From Octopus bimaculoides (lineage: Eukaryota), in assembly GCF_001194135.2 (NCBI RefSeq), contig NC_068985.1, positions 43,142,293-43,206,292 on the forward strand: DNA of 64,000 nt. Reading direction: 5' to 3'. The notes below the pieces were generated by a model. The model was given only the letters and a program-made list of their open reading frames with translations, was not told the origin of the DNA and did not search any database. A program made the position numbers and the translations under genes. Shown piece by piece: positions 3,516 to 63,437 of the stretch. How positions within the stretch are numbered: the first letter of the stretch is position 1; every line of letters starts with the position of its first letter.

Positions 3516-3587
3516 CTTTGTACATATCAGTAACTGCTGTAGCTGCATTTCGAAATGGACCCCATAAAGAACGGCCTTGGTGTCGAT
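3516..3587 (-). CDS. HAPSTR1: HAPSTR1/C16orf72 homolog, second coding exon (72 nt, phase 1-1)
   Basis: Acceptor tttttttgtcag| and donor AAAG|GTATGT. Joined to exon 1 it reads (D)RHQGRSLWGPFRNAATAVTDMYK, matching recalled human 'DRVCQQPGLSLWVPFQNAATAVTNLYK'. Not in the ORF track. No later exon found in 1-3515, so the gene continues left of the window. Confidence 0.92.
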
Positions 3588-3804
3588 CTGACAAAAAAAT
3601 AAACATAAGCTGTTAAATATAACTTTAAATTAAAAAACAGGATACAGATTAAAAAATAATAAAGTTAAATTGATATTAGTTAATTAGGTCAACTTAGACA
3701 AGTCCTCAAGTGGTACTCAGACTTCCATATGTCATGCTCACTCACCTGTAAATTTCACATCTTTCTTTAGTACCTCCTTATGCTTTCATTTCAATGTCCA
3801 TATT

Positions 3805-4230
3805 TTAACTTCTGTAGCACCAGCGAGCTAACAGAGTGCCCAACAGCGCTGACAGTAACCAGTCAGCCAGCCTCCCCTATACAAGATGCTTGTTGCTGAT
3901 AAGCAGCATTTCAGGAGTAGCCTCCATCCAGTGACTTCTGCAGAATAGGCTTCAAGGCCCAGCATTCACAACCATACAGTAGAACAGATTGTACAGTCAC
4001 ATAGAAGCTGAGCTTGATATGCTAGGGGACTTTGGAATTCTATACACTACCATGCTGTCCAGAGCCTCCTGTGCAAGCACCTTCTTAGCTCTTTACAAGT
4101 TGATCCACAAGCTTGGATATTTGAAGACTGACTTTGCTCAGCACAGTCTCTCCTGTTACCACCAGATGGAGATGGTTGAGGAGGGATATTATTGATGATG
4201 ATCTTAGTTACATGGAATCTAGCCAAAGAC
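3805..4230 (-). mobile_element. Degenerate LINE ORF2 C-terminal fragment (RTE-like, different family from 21742-23616)
   Basis: Minus strand reads FKYPSLWI..., KLSFYVTVQSVLLYGCECWALKPILQKSLDG, with frameshifts and stops. Boundaries approximate. Confidence 0.6.
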
Positions 4231-4456
4231 ATATCTTGGCACAATCAATGCTCTCAAAGTAACACATCATCTCCATAGTAAATATGTTTATAAATCTAAG
4301 AAAAAGACATTCAAAAAGCTGTTGCACCTAGTTTTGTACTGTGTGAAGATATCACTAGTTATTGTTGAGGTGGTAATATTAACTATGAGTTATCTGAGAC
4401 TGATACCAACTTAAGATAACTAAGTTTTAATCTCTCATTTTAATACTGTTTATTAA

Positions 4457-4613
4457 CCCTTTAGCATTTAAACTTCTCAGTCAAACGTAATGCTTATACA
4501 TTCATATTGTTTTGAATTAATCATGCATTATTTTGTAGTGATTGTTTATTTTTAGAATGACATTGTATGGTAGATGCAAGAGGTTGAATCTAGTCAGCTT
4601 AAATGCTAAATGG
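4457..4613. mobile_element. piggyBac-type MITE, copy 1
   Basis: TTAA|CCCTTTAGCATTTA ... AAATGCTAAATGG|TTAA: TTAA duplication and CCC...GGG-type ends. Confidence 0.8.
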
Positions 4614-4864
4614 TTAATTAACCCTTCCATGAAAAATTATACAAATTTCCATACAAAAAGCATCTTATAAGTCTTCCTTTTAAAATTTAAATATGAACTT
4701 TAAATCTTACAAAGACACACTGATGAGAATCTATATAAACTTTACTCTCATGAAGAAACATGTTTCAATGAGAGACAATATAGCAATTAAGTAAGGGAAA
4801 ATACTGCTTTATGAATCAGTAGAATAAATATACAACATAGCAATGAGAACACAGACAAAAACTT

Positions 4865-59547: not shown

Positions 59548-61090
59548 TAACTACTATTGAGCATGCCATGTTCATATGTGAGTATATTCACTAAATTCAA
59601 AGGAGAGGAATTTTGACACCAGAGCTGATGGTATACATAGATTAAATTGTGAACACTTGGGTAAGAACAACTAAATGGGGAAAACCCAAAATGAATGTGG
59701 TTTTATTCATATCACACGAGTGTATGACTATCTAGTGTTTAACTAACAAATTGTGTATTCACATTAAAGAATTAACATTTAGCCTGTTAAACTTTACAAA
59801 GAAATGCTGTCATTAATTATTGGTATTAAAGGGGTTGTTTTTTTTAATTATAATTAAATAGTTGTATTTAAATGCATTGTCTCTTAACTGCTGATCTACA
59901 ATAATATAAACCATAAAAAATATAAAAAGTTCTGTAAAATGAAGAATAAATATACAATCTACTGTGACTAGAAATTTTCTTCTATGGACTAACTGCAAAA
60001 AACATTGTTTTAAAATTCATTGCATTTAACTGTCTCTGAACTAAATTTACCAATGATATATTTGATTACATCAATCTCATATTAATGAGATGAAGAAAAA
60101 GTTATGTTGAATCTATTTCCTTGAAATGTATTTAACACATCAATTTATTGTTGTAAACTTTGTTATCACTGCCTATTAAATGAAAATGCTGAAAAATTAA
60201 GGTTTTATTGGTTTGTTTTGCATAGATTGTTTTTTCATGCTATTTAGTGATAATAGTCAAGAACCCTTTAATACCAATAATTAATATACAAGAGTTCTTT
60301 CCCACTGCATGGACACTGTTGGCTAGTATTTTTTACTATAGATGCTAGCTGACCAATGCCTTGCAAATGAATTTGACAGATAGAAGTCGTAAGAAGCCCA
60401 TTATNNNNNNNNNNNNNNNNNNNNNNNNNNNNNNNNNNNNTATATATATATATATATATATATATATATGTGTGTGTGTGTGTAAGAGTGTCATCATCTT
60501 GTCTTGACATTTGTGCACTGATTGAAAACTTTTACATTCTATCACAAAAACATGTCTGACCATGAAACTGCTTATTGTTCAAAGGGTGAGGGAAAATATG
60601 ACTTTGCTTGGAAAAAGGTAAGGGTTTAAATAGAAAATCTACCTCAAGTTTTGTCTCATCTATGCAAGCAAGGAATTGTAGATGTATCAATGATTTATGA
60701 TATGTAATTTTAAATATTGCTTAGCAAAAAATTAAAGGTATTATCACCAGTTTTAAATTATGAAACTCAGTATTCTAAATTGAAAATGCAAACGATCCTA
60801 CTTGACAATATGCCAATCTGTAATTTACATATTGTGGACTAAGTATAACTTATACTATAAGCAGCAACAGCACCGAAAAATTTGCTATACTGTGATAAAA
60901 ATTCTGCTGTAAATAGAAAGGGATACACACTATATAAAGAACTTGAATCGTGCTACATCTCTTTAATAGTTTTCATTGTAAGATTCTTATTTCTCTTTTC
61001 TTAAATGAATTATAATTTTACTATAATTTTTTAAATGTTAAAAAATGTTTTTTTTTTTTGTTTTTTTTTTTACTTAAATATGAATTTCAG

Positions 61091-61193
61091 ATGAAAGCCG
61101 TGCAGAAGCTCAATTCCAGTTTACTATTGAGAATATTAGTAAGCTAAAAGAAACTGTGCTAAGTCCACCATGTATGGTCAGGAATTTACCATG
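61091..61193 (+). CDS. USP7: USP7 exon, start of MATH/TRAF domain
   Basis: atttcag| (D)[35 protein letters not shown]|GTAAGC. Near-identical to recalled human '[32 protein letters not shown]'. Confidence 0.95.
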
Positions 61194-61911
61194 GTAAGCT
61201 TTTTTTAAATGTTAATTACTTTAATCAAGAGATTTCTAATTATCTTGAAATTTGATAGTAACAATCTCATTCACAGAAAAAAGTCTGACTGGACTACTTA
61301 AATCTATGTATATTAAATTACATAAGTAAATAAAAAAATTTCTTTATATAGAATTNNNNNNNNNNNNNNNNNNNNNNNNNNNNNNNNNNNNNNNNNNNNN
61401 NNNNNNNNNNNNNNNNNNNNNNNNNNNNNNNNNNNNNNNNNNNNNNNNNNNNNNNNNNNNNNNNNNNNNNNNNNNNNNNNNNNNNNNNNNNNNNNNNNNN
61501 NNNNNNNNNNNNNNNNNNNNNNNNNNNNNNNNNNNNNNNNNNNNNNNNNNNNNNNNNNNNNNNNNNNNNNNNNNNNNNNNNNNNNNNNNNNNNNNNNNNN
61601 NNNNNNNNNNNNNNNNNNNNNNNNNNNNNNNNNNNNNNNNNNNNNNNNNNNNNNNNNNNNNNNNNNNNNNNNNNNNNNNNNNNNNNNNNNNNNNNNNNNN
61701 NNNTTTTTTTTTTTTTTTTTTTTTTTTTTTTTTTTTTAATGGTTGTGATAAGCATTTTATAATTTTAATGGATCAATTAATCATTTATTGAAGTGTTTGT
61801 AGTTAATTTAAACATAAATTTCTGTTATTAATATATTATAAAAAAACCATATATTTACAAATATTAACTTGAGATTAGTTTATTTGTGTATGCCTAAATT
61901 ATTATGGATTA

Positions 61912-62937
61912 TCAGGTTGATGCAAAAACTAGTTTTTAAGTATCAGTATATCTCAAATTATTTTCATGAAAATAAGTTTTTTTTCATTCTCAGAATTTTA
62001 GGGTTCTAAGCTGGTGTTTTTGAACTGCTGCTTGGTTGTTGAAGGCCTGCAGGAAGTTAAGATGCTAGAAAAATGGTAATTGGTCAGAGAGAGGACTGGA
62101 GAGTAAGCTGGGTGAAGTAGTTTCATAGGCCAGTCTGTTCAATTTCATCAGAATCATTTGTCTGATATGGTTAGAGACTGCGATAAAGCAGAATTGTTCA
62201 TTTTCCATTGACTAATATTGGGCATAACCATTGCAGTCCCTGGTACATTTTGTGGATTTTTCTAGCAATATTTCTCTGCTGTAATGGCTTTATCTGGATT
62301 CAAAATGTAGCAAATGATTGCACTTGCTGATCATTGGTGATGATTACCTTCTTGCTTTGCTTCTTGGGTTTGACAAATGTCTTGATCTAACCACTGTGCA
62401 GAATAGCATTAGTTGTATTCAATCCATTTCTCATCATATATTGCAATGCAGTCACAAAATGGATTGGACTTTGTAATAATATATATTTGTTCAACTCATA
62501 GGTATCTATTTGTCATGGTATTTTGACATTCCAGTGTGGTGCAAATATCAAACTGTTGAATGGTCAATGTTTAGTTCCTCTGGAATTTTTTGATCTTTGG
62601 TGTGGCTTTGCTTTGGCCATTGGTTAATTGCAGAAAATCAGGTATGGCTTTCCTCATCTTCAAGGTTCTCCTCGCTTGCAGAAAACTTTTTATACCACTG
62701 TTGAACCACATTCATGGACAGTCCCCTGGCCAAATGCTTGGTTGATATCGCAAGCTGTTTCTGTTGCTTTTAAATCATAAAAATAAAATGGGTCCATCTT
62801 CAGTTTGACTTGACAAAATGAAAAAGAATAAACAGTGAAACCAAAATCATTAGTATAACTCAAATGTGCACTTCAAAATGATATAAGCATCAAGTTTTAA
62901 AGTAATGAAAACCACAATTATTTTTGTACCAACCTCA
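61912..62937 (-). mobile_element. Mariner relic with both TIRs, Hsmar1/cecropia-like ends, within a USP7 intron
   Basis: Ends TCAGGTTGATGCAAAAA and TTTTTGTACCAACCTCA resemble recalled Hsmar1 TIR TTAGGTTGGTGCAAAAG. Minus strand fragments: TACDINQAFGQGTV, IYDEKWIEYN, HPAYSPVLSLTNYHF. Heavily mutated. Confidence 0.75.
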
Positions 62938-63372
62938 CCTGCAATGTCTTCTTCCATTTTCCAAAGGGAAAAATGTAATAGTAGGATTTTTGCCTGTAAT
63001 TGTACTAATGAGTAATATTAAAATATTTTTTGAGCCTTCTAAATCATTCTTGCATTACTACTGGTATTAATATCAAATATTTTTCTTTGTTTATAGTTGA
63101 AGTAGTTTTGAACAGTCTCCTGTGGTTCTTTAGTTTAGCCGATAGCTACTATGTAATTCTGTATATCACACTCATTCTTAAAAACATTGGGGCATCACAA
63201 TAAGATTATAAGCTTCTGATTAACAAATAATGATAGCTGTGGAACTCTGTTAAAGCTCAGCAGCTGCAGTAGGTGATCAGAAGCAATTAATCAAAATGAG
63301 CAACTTGTCGAAAATTTGATTTGTGATTAATACTTTATATTTCCCTCTTACTAAAACTGTTTTCTCTTTTAG

Positions 63373-63437
63373 AAATACAGCATCTCTTCTATACCAAAGA
63401 GAATGATTGGGGTTTCAGTCATTTTATATCTTGGAAT
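63373..63437 (+). CDS. USP7: USP7 exon carrying the substrate-binding DWGF motif of the MATH domain
   Basis: tttctcttttag| [22 protein letters not shown] |GTAAGT (phase 1-0). Recalled human '[22 protein letters not shown]'. Confidence 0.95.

Follow-up and report, generated by a model that had tools for sequence, protein, structure and literature searches.

A divergent HAPSTR1–USP7 gene pair in an octopod genome and its apparent bilaterian ancestry

Introduction

Among microsyntenic gene pairs that have been conserved, a 5'-5' orientation, closely spaced genes and co-expression are over-represented, according to Irimia et al. (2012, PMC3514665), in which the 5'-5' conserved ancestral microsyntenic pairs (CAMPs) include HSPE1–HSPD1. 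USP7–HAPSTR1 resembles the CAMPs in uniting unrelated genes that are adjacent and divergent across distant phyla, in a spacer that is very short in most lineages, in conserved intergenic sequence and in the membership of both genes in one pathway. USP7–HAPSTR1 is an old bilaterian linkage of this known general kind. The HSPE1–HSPD1 spacer stays below 1 kb, whereas the human USP7 and HAPSTR1 genes, which are divergently oriented, are more than 100 kb apart, as against 0.24-0.92 kb in invertebrates, 3.4 kb in Argonauta hians (from the MNH start) and 1.6 kb in the octopus DNA described here.

At human 16p13.2 the same two orthologs, USP7 and C16orf72/HAPSTR1, are adjacent; the original prediction had named them as neighbours, and their adjacency is published (PMC11148184). 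In the human papers it figures as a confounder of amplification and CNV analyses and not as a feature of evolutionary interest. HAPSTR1 is bound by USP7 and made more stable by it (PMC10921065, PMC11148184), so the originally recorded statement that USP7 regulates HAPSTR1 stability is in print (PMC10921065). HUWE1 binding by HAPSTR1 requires named F, AA and Y residues (PMC9834230). CRISPR proximity bias affects neighbouring genes and could have partly inflated the human co-essentiality evidence for USP7 and HAPSTR1 (PMC11250378).

A second point of comparison is provided by vertebrate CpG-island bidirectional promoters at housekeeping genes (described by Adachi and Lieber, 2002; cited in PMC3514665), which, like the octopod interval, are CpG-undepleted, repeat-poor and located between divergent, broadly required genes. 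Unlike vertebrate CpG islands, the octopod interval has a G+C content of 33-46%, below the formal CpG-island criterion; its start codons are 1.6 kb apart, which also sets it apart from these promoters, and the octopod promoter is putative, proposed from sequence features. A putative YY1-type motif near a first exon is common to both.

Results

The window, a 64,000-nucleotide stretch of Octopus bimaculoides DNA, contains a correctly assembled head-to-head pair, HAPSTR1 (minus strand) and USP7 (plus strand), and covers the 5' parts of both genes (HAPSTR1 exons 1 and 2; USP7 exons 1-4 and 6). The divergence of the exons, and the distances originally predicted, hold on re-measured coordinates: the start codons lie 1,635 bp (1.6 kb) apart, and the HAPSTR1 ATG lies 3,221 bp (3.2 kb) from the MNH methionine of USP7. 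The HAPSTR1 features are listed below; here and throughout, a slash marks a splice junction.

32798..32600, minus strand: coding portion of exon 1; ATG at 32798-32796, 66 codons plus 1 nt, donor g/gtatg
3588..32599, minus strand: intron 1, 29,012 bp, CpG-depleted, with SINE-like repeats, a degenerate LINE and a 788-N gap at 28158-28945
3587..3516, minus strand: exon 2, 72 nt, phase 1 at both ends, encoding D-RHQGRSLWGPFRNAATAVTDMYK

The splice sites of exon 2 were read directly (acceptor cag/, donor G/gtatg), and its phase-1 join to exon 1 yields ...AQMYR/DRHQGRSLWGPFRNAATAVTDMYK, the human counterpart being ...AQLYKDR...LWVPFQNAATAVTNLYK. Exon 2 matches human HAPSTR1 aa 83-117 (tblastn). It also contains the F, AA and Y residues assigned to HUWE1 binding in PMC9834230. 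The product matches the Pfam family PF15251 (TAPR1-like; 90.5 bits, cut-off 27, 2e-25), and exon 1 shows 97% amino-acid identity to the A. hians C16orf72 homolog P0300 and is 86-89% identical to octopod contigs at the nucleotide level. The A. hians locus L010 has its exons in the same order and orientation, with exon 1 at 10007-10198 and exon 2 at 27311-27370.

For USP7, one exon has been added beyond those of the original prediction (exon 3):

34433-34460, plus strand: exon 1, a mini-exon; ATG ACA GCC AAG GTC TCT CCG TCG GAC G/GTGAGT, encoding MTAKVSPSD, phase 1
35900-36124, plus strand: exon 2, the MNH exon; (D)IGRITSKHVKVTVSQKSPSTPRREHRHKTVTGGAGEEDT-MNHVNGK...VEMESRE, ending G/gttagc, phase 1
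59047-59136, plus strand: exon 3, 90 nt, phase 1 at both ends; (E)ETQHHGDTPMNIVNGDIQDSGNRDEEMEE, corresponding to about human aa 27-62
61091-61193, plus strand: exon 4, where the MATH/TRAF domain begins; (D)-33 residues-(W), ending TG/gtaagc, phase 2
61356-61703, plus strand: assembly gap of 348 N at the putative site of exon 5; human aa ~98-153 missing
63373-63437, plus strand: exon 6, MATH domain; 21 residues, donor /gtaagt

The upstream ATG at about 34.43 kb, proposed earlier as a start, proved on comparison with octopods and Tegillarca to belong to a genuine, conserved first coding exon. Its ATG, frame and donor are unchanged in A. hians and in three octopod contigs from Logan, among which just two substitutions occur, both third-position and synonymous, and the annotated 5' end of Tegillarca USP7 has a homologous mini-exon (MTAKVTRLD G/GTAAG). 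The MNH methionine (ATG 36019) is internal to a frame that is open from 35890, and the exon 2 acceptor, ctgcag/AC, is phase-compatible with exon 1. The coding extension 5' of MNH contains a stretch, A[DE]IGRI.SKHVKV, that is kept in Tegillarca, Tachypleus and Acanthaster, where most changes fall at codon position 3. Translation of USP7 most likely starts at the conserved mini-exon, 1.6 kb from the HAPSTR1 ATG, as judged from this comparison. The mini-exon and the in-frame extension upstream of MNH, both extra features of invertebrate USP7, are not known from human USP7 isoforms.

Further downstream, exon 2 has 87% nucleotide identity to A. hians; exon 3, with acceptor tttgtag/ and donor G/gtgagt, matches Tegillarca L011 6643-6545 (tblastn, E 2e-4); and exon 4 is 72% identical to human USP7 aa 66-97. 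When the spliced N-terminus was compared with PDB sequences, all matches (11/11) were USP7. Together with Pfam and annotated relatives, these matches bear out the original assignment of both genes as HAPSTR1 and USP7 orthologs.

Six N runs fall inside the studied region. Those at 28158, 48946 and 60405 are intronic. The two 10-N gaps between the genes leave order and orientation unaffected: that at 34719-34728 is bridged by a colinear alignment of 33665-35017 with gap-free A. hians sequence (L010 8911-7511), and that at 35282-35291 sits within (TA)n repeats, beyond which the colinear A. hians alignment restarts at 35549, the spacing being similar in the two sequences. Independent Logan contigs from a further octopod have about 1.5 kb between HAPSTR1 exon 1 and the block of the USP7 mini-exon. 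The 348-N gap probably hides one USP7 exon, exon 5, because the flanking exons cannot be joined in frame; exon 4 ends in TG/ and exon 6 begins with AA, so that a direct join reads TGA. A search of 61194-63372 in any frame gave no match to the segment of human aa ~98-153, which in Tegillarca is encoded by separate exons.

Both 5' ends lie within a single domain of distinctive composition, with three features inside it:

30001..38000, no strand: CpG-undepleted (CpG-island-like) domain spanning both 5' ends, with strongly CpG-depleted gene bodies on either side
32799..34432, no strand: inter-start interval, 1,634 bp, a putative shared promoter region; AT-rich, with microsatellites, not CpG-depleted
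34202..34685, no strand: conserved block and CpG peak, 24 CpG in 300 bp, including USP7 exon 1
34507..34546, no strand: deeply conserved element, ...TTCCCAAGCATGGTAGGCGGCCATCTTGTTTATTTTTG (reverse complement CAAAAATAAACAAGATGGCCGCC), 46 nt 3' of the USP7 exon 1 donor

In 1-kb bins, CpG o/e is 0.55-1.32 at 30-38 kb versus 0.00-0.53 in every usable bin outside, and it reaches 1.1-1.9 in the inter-start interval, the window median being 0.17; CpG density peaks at 34.2-34.6 kb. The interval had been described as free of transposons, and intra-window repeat comparison indeed found the stretch from 29.4 to 43.3 kb devoid of interspersed repeats, such repeats being confined to 1.5-29.3 kb and 43.3-53.4 kb, with a single degenerate LINE reverse transcriptase at 21.66-22.68 kb; the description needs amending in that microsatellites are present and the repeat-free zone, about 14 kb, is wider than the intergenic interval.

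The inter-start interval can be aligned to A. hians over its full length. Its most conserved part outside HAPSTR1 is the block at 34202..34685, which is 81-85% identical to A. hians and Logan octopod contigs amid hardly alignable neighbouring DNA and probably contains the USP7 core promoter. The element within it, presumably YY1-like with a FOX-like flank, is unchanged in five octopod sequences and has counterparts, at the corresponding position and oriented alike, in Tegillarca (GAAAATAAACAAGATGGCGG) and Tachypleus (GAAAATAAAGAAGATGGCGA). Over about 24 nt it is the top 24-mer match between the regions (20-21/24), a level reached by 0/200 shuffles. A search upstream of HAPSTR1 in lineages without the linkage did not find it, and it may belong to USP7 alone.

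Synteny in relatives was scored on HAPSTR1 loci with 10-kb flanks. In four taxa, USP7 with the domains MATH, UCH, USP7_ICP0_bdg and USP7_C2 lies on the opposite strand directly upstream of HAPSTR1:

Argonauta hians (octopod): head-to-head pair, 3.4 kb apart as annotated from the MNH start
Tegillarca granosa (clam): head-to-head pair, 243 bp apart
Tachypleus tridentatus (horseshoe crab): head-to-head pair, 917 bp apart
Acanthaster planci (starfish): head-to-head pair, 716 bp apart
Priapulus: pair broken; divergent partner of HAPSTR1 a Rhomboid-domain gene at 101 bp
Daphnia: pair broken; divergent partner TyrRS at 373 bp
Helobdella: pair broken; divergent partner a thioredoxin-domain gene at 796 bp

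In Ptychodera, the 10 kb upstream of HAPSTR1 showed neither a gene nor an exon of USP7. With about 20,000 genes, a given gene is expected by chance as divergent 5' neighbour about once in 10^4 per lineage. The presence of the pair in mollusc, chelicerate, echinoderm and human, and its absence from three taxa, point to a linkage that is ancestral to bilaterians and was later lost in some; the suggestion that it predates the protostome–deuterostome split is borne out by divergent pairs in bivalve, chelicerate and echinoderm at 243-917 bp.

Discussion

We propose, with moderate confidence, that USP7 and HAPSTR1 form an ancestral pair that would be transcribed outward, on the plus and minus strand respectively, from one compact, repeat-free, CpG-undepleted promoter domain, and that has been kept through shared or interleaved cis-elements. 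If the two promoters share or interleave essential elements, any breakpoint that separated them would harm at least one essential gene, which could account for survival of the linkage over more than 500 million years. The CpG-undepleted domain and the conserved promoter-type element make a shared or interleaved promoter a plausible constraint. Co-transcription of a deubiquitinase and its substrate from such a promoter is also plausible. In the least supported step of the model, the stabilising effect of USP7 on HAPSTR1 in the HUWE1 pathway might additionally favour coupled transcription, which would keep the dosage of the two matched. The start-codon spacing of 1.6 kb counts against a shared promoter, as it exceeds the usual bidirectional-promoter criterion of less than 1 kb. 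With the human genes more than 100 kb apart, no bidirectional promoter can act in human, and this mechanism cannot explain persistence there.

Could the arrangement be an artefact, with scaffolding over N runs having fused unrelated contigs, or with exons that are paralogs or pseudogenes? The six N runs, two of them between the genes, and the absent USP7 exon invite the question, but we give this reading almost no credence: the whole interval is colinear with a related species' gap-free assembly, independent contigs of another octopod carry both blocks, four other genomes have the identical arrangement, and in all exons the frame is intact, the splice sites are canonical and the phases agree. 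We likewise consider it improbable that the pair is a bystander of regulatory-block constraint, in which long-range enhancers of one gene reside within the other or past it, the first introns of 23-29 kb being one such place. Such introns do flank the promoters on both sides, vertebrate adjacency survives a large spacer, and GRB-type constraint is the other main explanation of conserved pairs in PMC3514665; yet both genes are broadly required and of housekeeping type rather than developmental regulators, the spacer is below 1 kb in Tegillarca, Tachypleus and Acanthaster, CpG depletion and interspersed repeats mark both introns, and blastn of the window against A. hians found no conserved stretch of at least 200 bp outside exons and promoter blocks.

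Rather unlikely is the reading that the ancestral pair was retained by inertia, with no selection for co-expression and a merely coincidental biochemical link between USP7 and HAPSTR1. Breakpoints would seldom fall in a spacer as small as a sub-kilobase one, and rearrangement is slow in the lineages with the pair (molluscs, horseshoe crab, starfish, vertebrates), while losses occurred in Helobdella and Daphnia, lineages known for scrambled gene order, and in Priapulus too. Human adjacency at a distance of more than 100 kb is likewise maintained without a shared promoter. Against inertia, most ancestral neighbour pairs did not last across all three bilaterian superclades, according to PMC3514665; the 24-nt element by USP7 exon 1, conserved between mollusc and chelicerate, indicates constraint on the interval itself; and coincidence is an unlikely reason for a gene to lie next to one whose product directly binds and stabilises its own. 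For constraint by shared or interleaved cis-elements, the reading we prefer, the broken pairs in Priapulus, Daphnia and Helobdella imply that coupling is dispensable. In each of these lineages HAPSTR1 has acquired a new divergent partner within 1 kb, as if a generic bidirectional housekeeping promoter sufficed, and it seems content with any divergent partner.

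HAPSTR1 and USP7 in the Octopus Window

The main exons of the two genes were placed in the window by tblastn, with the human HAPSTR1 and USP7 proteins as queries, followed for HAPSTR1 by reading of the sequence. The resulting models are as follows.

32798..32600, minus strand: HAPSTR1 exon 1
3587..3516, minus strand: HAPSTR1 exon 2
34433-34460, plus strand: USP7 exon 1, a 28-nt mini-exon encoding MTAKV..., ATGACAGCCAAGGTCTCTCCGTCGGACG followed by GTGAGT
35900-36124, plus strand: USP7 exon 2 (the MNH exon), ATG at 36019, ending G/gt at 36124
59047-59136, plus strand: USP7 exon 3, human residues ~27-62, peptide EETQHHGDTPMNIVNGDIQDSGNRDEEMEE, confirmed in Tegillarca and newly added here
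61091-61193, plus strand: USP7 exon 4 (MATH), matching human USP7 residues 66-97 by tblastn
63373-63437, plus strand: USP7 exon 6 (MATH), matching human USP7 residues 154-174 by tblastn

The two HAPSTR1 exons splice in phase 1 to give ...AQMYR-D-RHQGRSLWGPFRNAATAVTDMYK, colinear with human ...AQLYKDR...LWVPFQNAATAVTNLYK, and the 90-residue peptide matches Pfam PF15251 (TAPR1-like) over profile positions 1-72 with 90.5 bits (cut-off 27, E 2e-25). Its N-terminal domain aligns with 34 animal homologs from many phyla; among named relatives the closest is Argonauta hians, whose C16orf72 homolog is 97% identical, and a second octopod, represented by Logan contigs only, has an 87% identical HAPSTR1. 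Gene structure is conserved as well, with exon 1 ending at human residue ~75 before a short second exon, an exon end common to the window, Ptychodera, Acanthaster, A. hians, Tegillarca, Priapulus, and Daphnia. Oligomerization and HUWE1 binding are reported to need F90, AA93-94, LY100-101, and G119 of human HAPSTR1 (PMC9834230); the window protein keeps F, AA, and Y (PFRNAATAVTDMYK) and has M in place of L100, the exon for G119 lying beyond the window. Invertebrate homologs came from a representative search and a third profile search. The 90-residue peptide as sole query matched one protein, a profile that included human HAPSTR1 matched vertebrates only, and exact look-up returned no record for the window exon 1 ORF or for Tachypleus isoform X2.

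All 11 matches of the spliced USP7 N-terminus in the PDB are USP7, as TRAF-domain or full-length chains. The window contains the N-terminal MATH/TRAF domain, the middle of which is absent at a gap, and the UCH, USP7_ICP0_bdg, and USP7_C2 exons fall past the window end. The colinear A. hians gene encodes an 1115-residue product with these three domains, and its MNH exon is 87% identical in nucleotides to that of the window. Exon 3, being acidic and of low complexity, was missed by the first tblastn; its placement makes the long USP7 intron 22.9 kb (36125-59046). It lies within ORF 58998-59381, which, like ORF 5413-6002 and the minus-strand ORF 34195-34551, has no Pfam match as a whole. One MATH exon (human residues ~98-153) is missing, because the flanking exons are out of phase (the exon before the gap ends in TG and the next recognisable one starts with AA, a join that creates TGA) and no match to human residues 98-153 was found in 61194-63372. 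It most likely falls in the 348-N gap at 61356-61703, the length of which is an estimate only.

Does the head-to-head order reflect the chromosome or its assembly? The window is AT-rich (33.7% G+C) and contains six runs of N, two of them between the genes. Their varying lengths are compatible with short reads scaffolded by mate pairs, as in the published A. argo draft (PMC9635652). A scaffolding artefact in the gene order is ruled out by the gap-free A. hians locus, which is colinear with window 32591-36295 in order and orientation, and by independent octopod contigs in which the HAPSTR1 exon 1 and USP7 exon 1 blocks lie 1.5 kb apart. A single alignment of the window with A. hians bridges the gap at 34719-34728, and at the gap at 35282-35291, within (TA)n, the alignment picks up again with similar spacing. 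Microsatellites of the (TA)n, (CT)n, and (CA)n types at 34660-34790, 35210-35340, 34040-34090, and 36130-36210 flank the 10-N gaps and the MNH exon, and are likely to cause the assembly breaks.

Conservation of the Pair across Bilaterians

Orthologs of HAPSTR1 in public assemblies were inspected with 10-kb flanks.

Divergent 5' neighbour of HAPSTR1 and spacing
Argonauta hians (octopod): USP7, 3.4 kb
Tegillarca granosa (bivalve): USP7, exons verified by tblastn, 243 bp
Acanthaster planci (starfish): USP7, 716 bp
Tachypleus tridentatus (horseshoe crab): USP7, 917 bp
Priapulus caudatus: Rhomboid-domain gene, 101 bp (L012 9900/10001)
Daphnia pulex: Tyrosyl-tRNA synthetase, 373 bp (L013 9628/10001)
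Helobdella robusta (leech): thioredoxin-domain gene, 796 bp (L015 9205/10001)

Cephalopoda, Bivalvia, Chelicerata, and Echinodermata thus have the pair, which is absent from the Priapulus, Daphnia, and Helobdella loci; in Ptychodera flava (a hemichordate) the 10 kb upstream of HAPSTR1 holds no annotated gene and no USP7 exon detectable by tblastn. In the window and at every positive locus the two genes are on opposite strands, the 5' end of USP7 pointing toward HAPSTR1. The USP7 products of A. hians, Acanthaster, and Tachypleus contain MATH, UCH, USP7_ICP0_bdg, and USP7_C2 domains; for the 1020-residue Tegillarca product only the last three are listed, and the MATH exons are present in the DNA. 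We take the human pair to be divergent as well, with a spacer of more than 100 kb. Its adjacency is published (PMC11148184).

Presence in Lophotrochozoa, Ecdysozoa, Ambulacraria, and Chordata bears out the original prediction that the linkage is older than the protostome–deuterostome split, and indicates that the pair existed in the bilaterian ancestor and was later lost several times, a conclusion drawn from bilaterian loci. Independent origin by chance, expected about once in 10^4 per lineage, is not a credible explanation. The pair shares with a CAMP (PMC3514665) the adjacency of two unrelated orthologs and their divergent orientation across distant lineages. Set beside a bidirectional promoter pair, defined by less than 1 kb between transcription start sites, the distance between gene ranges is 243 bp in Tegillarca, 716 bp in Acanthaster, and 917 bp in Tachypleus, and the ATGs of the window are 1,635 bp apart.

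Where USP7 is not its neighbour, HAPSTR1 still has a divergent partner at 101-796 bp (Priapulus, Daphnia, Helobdella). HAPSTR1 would appear to occupy a bidirectional promoter whatever its partner.

One CpG-Undepleted, Repeat-Free Domain Spans Both 5' Ends

Start codons had been placed 1.6 kb apart, or 3.2 kb to the MNH methionine; measured from the HAPSTR1 ATG, the distances are 1,635 bp and 3,221 bp. The CpG observed/expected ratio (o/e) has a window median of 0.17, and a single contiguous domain at ~30-38 kb stands out at 0.55-1.32 per 1-kb bin, all usable bins elsewhere giving 0.00-0.53. The maximum falls at 34.2-34.6 kb, where 300 bp hold 24 CpG and o/e rises to 1.9. CpG depletion in both gene bodies is very strong, as would be expected if these were heavily methylated in the germline around one unmethylated island, and we infer that ~30-38 kb would form a single promoter domain, hypomethylated in the germline, with a methylated gene body on either side. 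Across the gene bodies (1-30000 and 38001-64000) o/e is mostly 0.0-0.3, and in the promoter domain (30001-38000) about 1. A CpG island of the Gardiner-Garden type has o/e above 0.6 and G+C of at least 50% over at least 200 bp; at 33-34.6 kb o/e is 1.0-1.9 but G+C only 0.33-0.46, and the region is CpG-island-like against its 0.17 background, not a formal CpG island.

Interspersed repeats, detected by self-comparison of the window, are confined to 1.5-29.3 kb and 43.3-53.4 kb. The repeat-free zone between them, ~14 kb, exceeds the intergenic interval in width and matches the CpG domain in position. No Rfam family or tRNA was detected in the window.

21658-22683, plus strand: frameshifted LINE (non-LTR) remnant in HAPSTR1 intron 1, with the RVT_1 motifs FVDMEKAFD and YVDD followed by a PHD-type zinc finger
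10123-10308, 23351-23611, 27010-27224, 48253-48371, 15137-15244, 6756-6883, and others, both strands: SINE-like repeat family, ~100-220 bp, 75-93% identical, in both long introns
21059-21276, 53236-53438, 6500-6579, 4453-4576: second repeat family, from the self-comparison

USP7 Probably Starts Upstream of the MNH Methionine

The upstream ATG of the original prediction, at ~34.43 kb, proves to be real: the mini-exon is kept, with its donor intact, in A. hians and three Logan contigs, and differs among these sequences by two substitutions, both third-position and synonymous. Tegillarca has a homologous exon, MTAKVTRLD with the donor G/GTAAG, at the annotated 5' end of its USP7. The frame is open 5' of the MNH methionine, and the sequence A[DE]IGRI.SKHVKV... 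encoded there is kept in Tegillarca, Tachypleus, and Acanthaster, with differences mostly at the third codon position (for example, 8 vs 2 between Tachypleus and Acanthaster). Reciprocal tblastn gave E values of 1e-5 to 1e-11. Since the acceptor ctgcag/AC at 35899/35900 is compatible with the phase of the mini-exon, the combination of mini-exon and open, conserved frame makes it likely that the window protein begins MTAKVSPSD-D-IGRITSKHVKV...MNH... (predicted N-terminal stretch, MTAKVSPSDDIGRITSKHVKV).

Coding extension upstream of the MNH methionine
Window: 34433-34460 and 35900-36018
Tegillarca (L011): 9731-9704 and ~9545-9420
Tachypleus (L016): ~9218-9084
Acanthaster (L009): ~9437-9285

No MTAKV-like mini-exon was found in Tachypleus or Acanthaster between HAPSTR1 and the conserved element described below. 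In A. hians, Tachypleus, and Acanthaster the annotated USP7 seems to begin at MNH. We know of no comparable extension in human USP7. The start of USP7 in these invertebrates would accordingly move from MNH to a conserved mini-exon, which shifts where its promoter should be sought.

A Deeply Conserved Element near the 5' End of USP7

An unbiased search for the best ungapped 24-mer between 5' regions, with 200 dinucleotide shuffles as null, picked the same site both times: 20/24 positions agree between Tegillarca and Tachypleus and 21/24 between Tegillarca and the window, and 0/200 shuffles reached either value. In the sense of HAPSTR1 the element reads GAAAATAAA[C/G]AAGATGGCG; on the plus strand of the window it is GGCGGCCATCTTGTTTATTTTTG at 34524-34546, and it may also be written GCCATCTTGTTTATTTT, with GCCATCTT as its YY1-like core. 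It is invariant in five octopod sequences and weaker in Acanthaster (AACATGGCC). In the molluscs it lies in USP7 intron 1 directly past exon 1, and in Tachypleus ~150 nt upstream of the extended exon. A GCAtTaTGGG-like motif follows it in all four lineages examined. We presume the core to resemble a YY1 site, the AT-rich flank a forkhead site, and the second motif a ZNF143/SBS site.

Element and flank
Window: 34507-34546
Tegillarca (L011): ~9609-9660
Tachypleus (L016): ~9359-9410
Acanthaster (L009): ~9585-9640

In Priapulus, Daphnia, Helobdella, and Ptychodera the 1-2 kb upstream of HAPSTR1 do not contain the element, which suggests that it may belong to USP7 or have vanished along with the linkage. 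A transcript contig without genomic context (P0122) has a 66-nt 5' UTR that lacks it. We also considered a noncoding first exon of HAPSTR1 starting at the YY1-like element (minus-strand donor TGG/GTAAGC at ~34505); since A. hians does not share this donor, the idea is kept at low confidence.

Why Has the Pair Been Retained?

The best-supported reading is that the two genes use a shared or interleaved promoter, as suggested by one CpG-undepleted domain and the 24-nt element; such a promoter would not be splittable without damage to an essential gene. A promoter of this kind would place the pair in a class already described, that of conserved 5'-5' microsyntenic pairs (PMC3514665). HAPSTR1 is both bound and stabilised by USP7 (PMC10921065; PMC11148184), so that selection for coupled dosage of the two proteins is plausible. 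DepMap co-essentiality of neighbouring genes may be inflated by CRISPR proximity bias (PMC11250378), from which the binding and stability assays are independent. Against an obligatory coupling speak three losses, the other divergent partners of HAPSTR1, and the wide human spacer. We consider it rather unlikely that the 5' ends are physically interleaved round a YY1/FOX-like element conserved for more than 500 million years, with USP7 exon 1 on one strand and a HAPSTR1 start or control element on the other, inside USP7 intron 1. On that proposal the element would set the output of both genes together, one encoding a deubiquitinase and the other the HUWE1 adaptor stabilised by it, the two genes would form an obligate dosage-matched unit of the stress/p53 ubiquitin network, and the N-terminal extension of invertebrate USP7 (MTAKV...IGRI.SKHVKV) would be previously unannotated.

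Human adjacency, the biochemical link, and the general phenomenon are already known, and the pair represents no new kind of genome organisation. Its deep conservation is not described in the main texts or in the supplements of microsynteny papers that we searched, a set outside which falls the supplement of Irimia et al. 2012, the likeliest to list the pair. Two by-products are a corrected, predicted 5' gene model of USP7 and a deeply conserved, putative promoter-type element. HAPSTR1 has been characterised only recently. What ties it to USP7 comes from human cells, and some of that evidence (co-essentiality, co-amplification) is confounded because the genes are neighbours. That molluscs, a chelicerate, and an echinoderm keep the two genes head to head, usually less than 1 kb apart, offers independent evolutionary support for functional coupling. 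Taken with the human adjacency already published, the arrangement extends over all three bilaterian superclades. The putative natural promoters, at 243-917 bp, are compact enough for direct tests of co-regulation. Downstream of HAPSTR1 in Tegillarca (L011 20987-27300, minus strand) lies, tail to tail with it, a gene with a weak Mre11_DNA_bind match.
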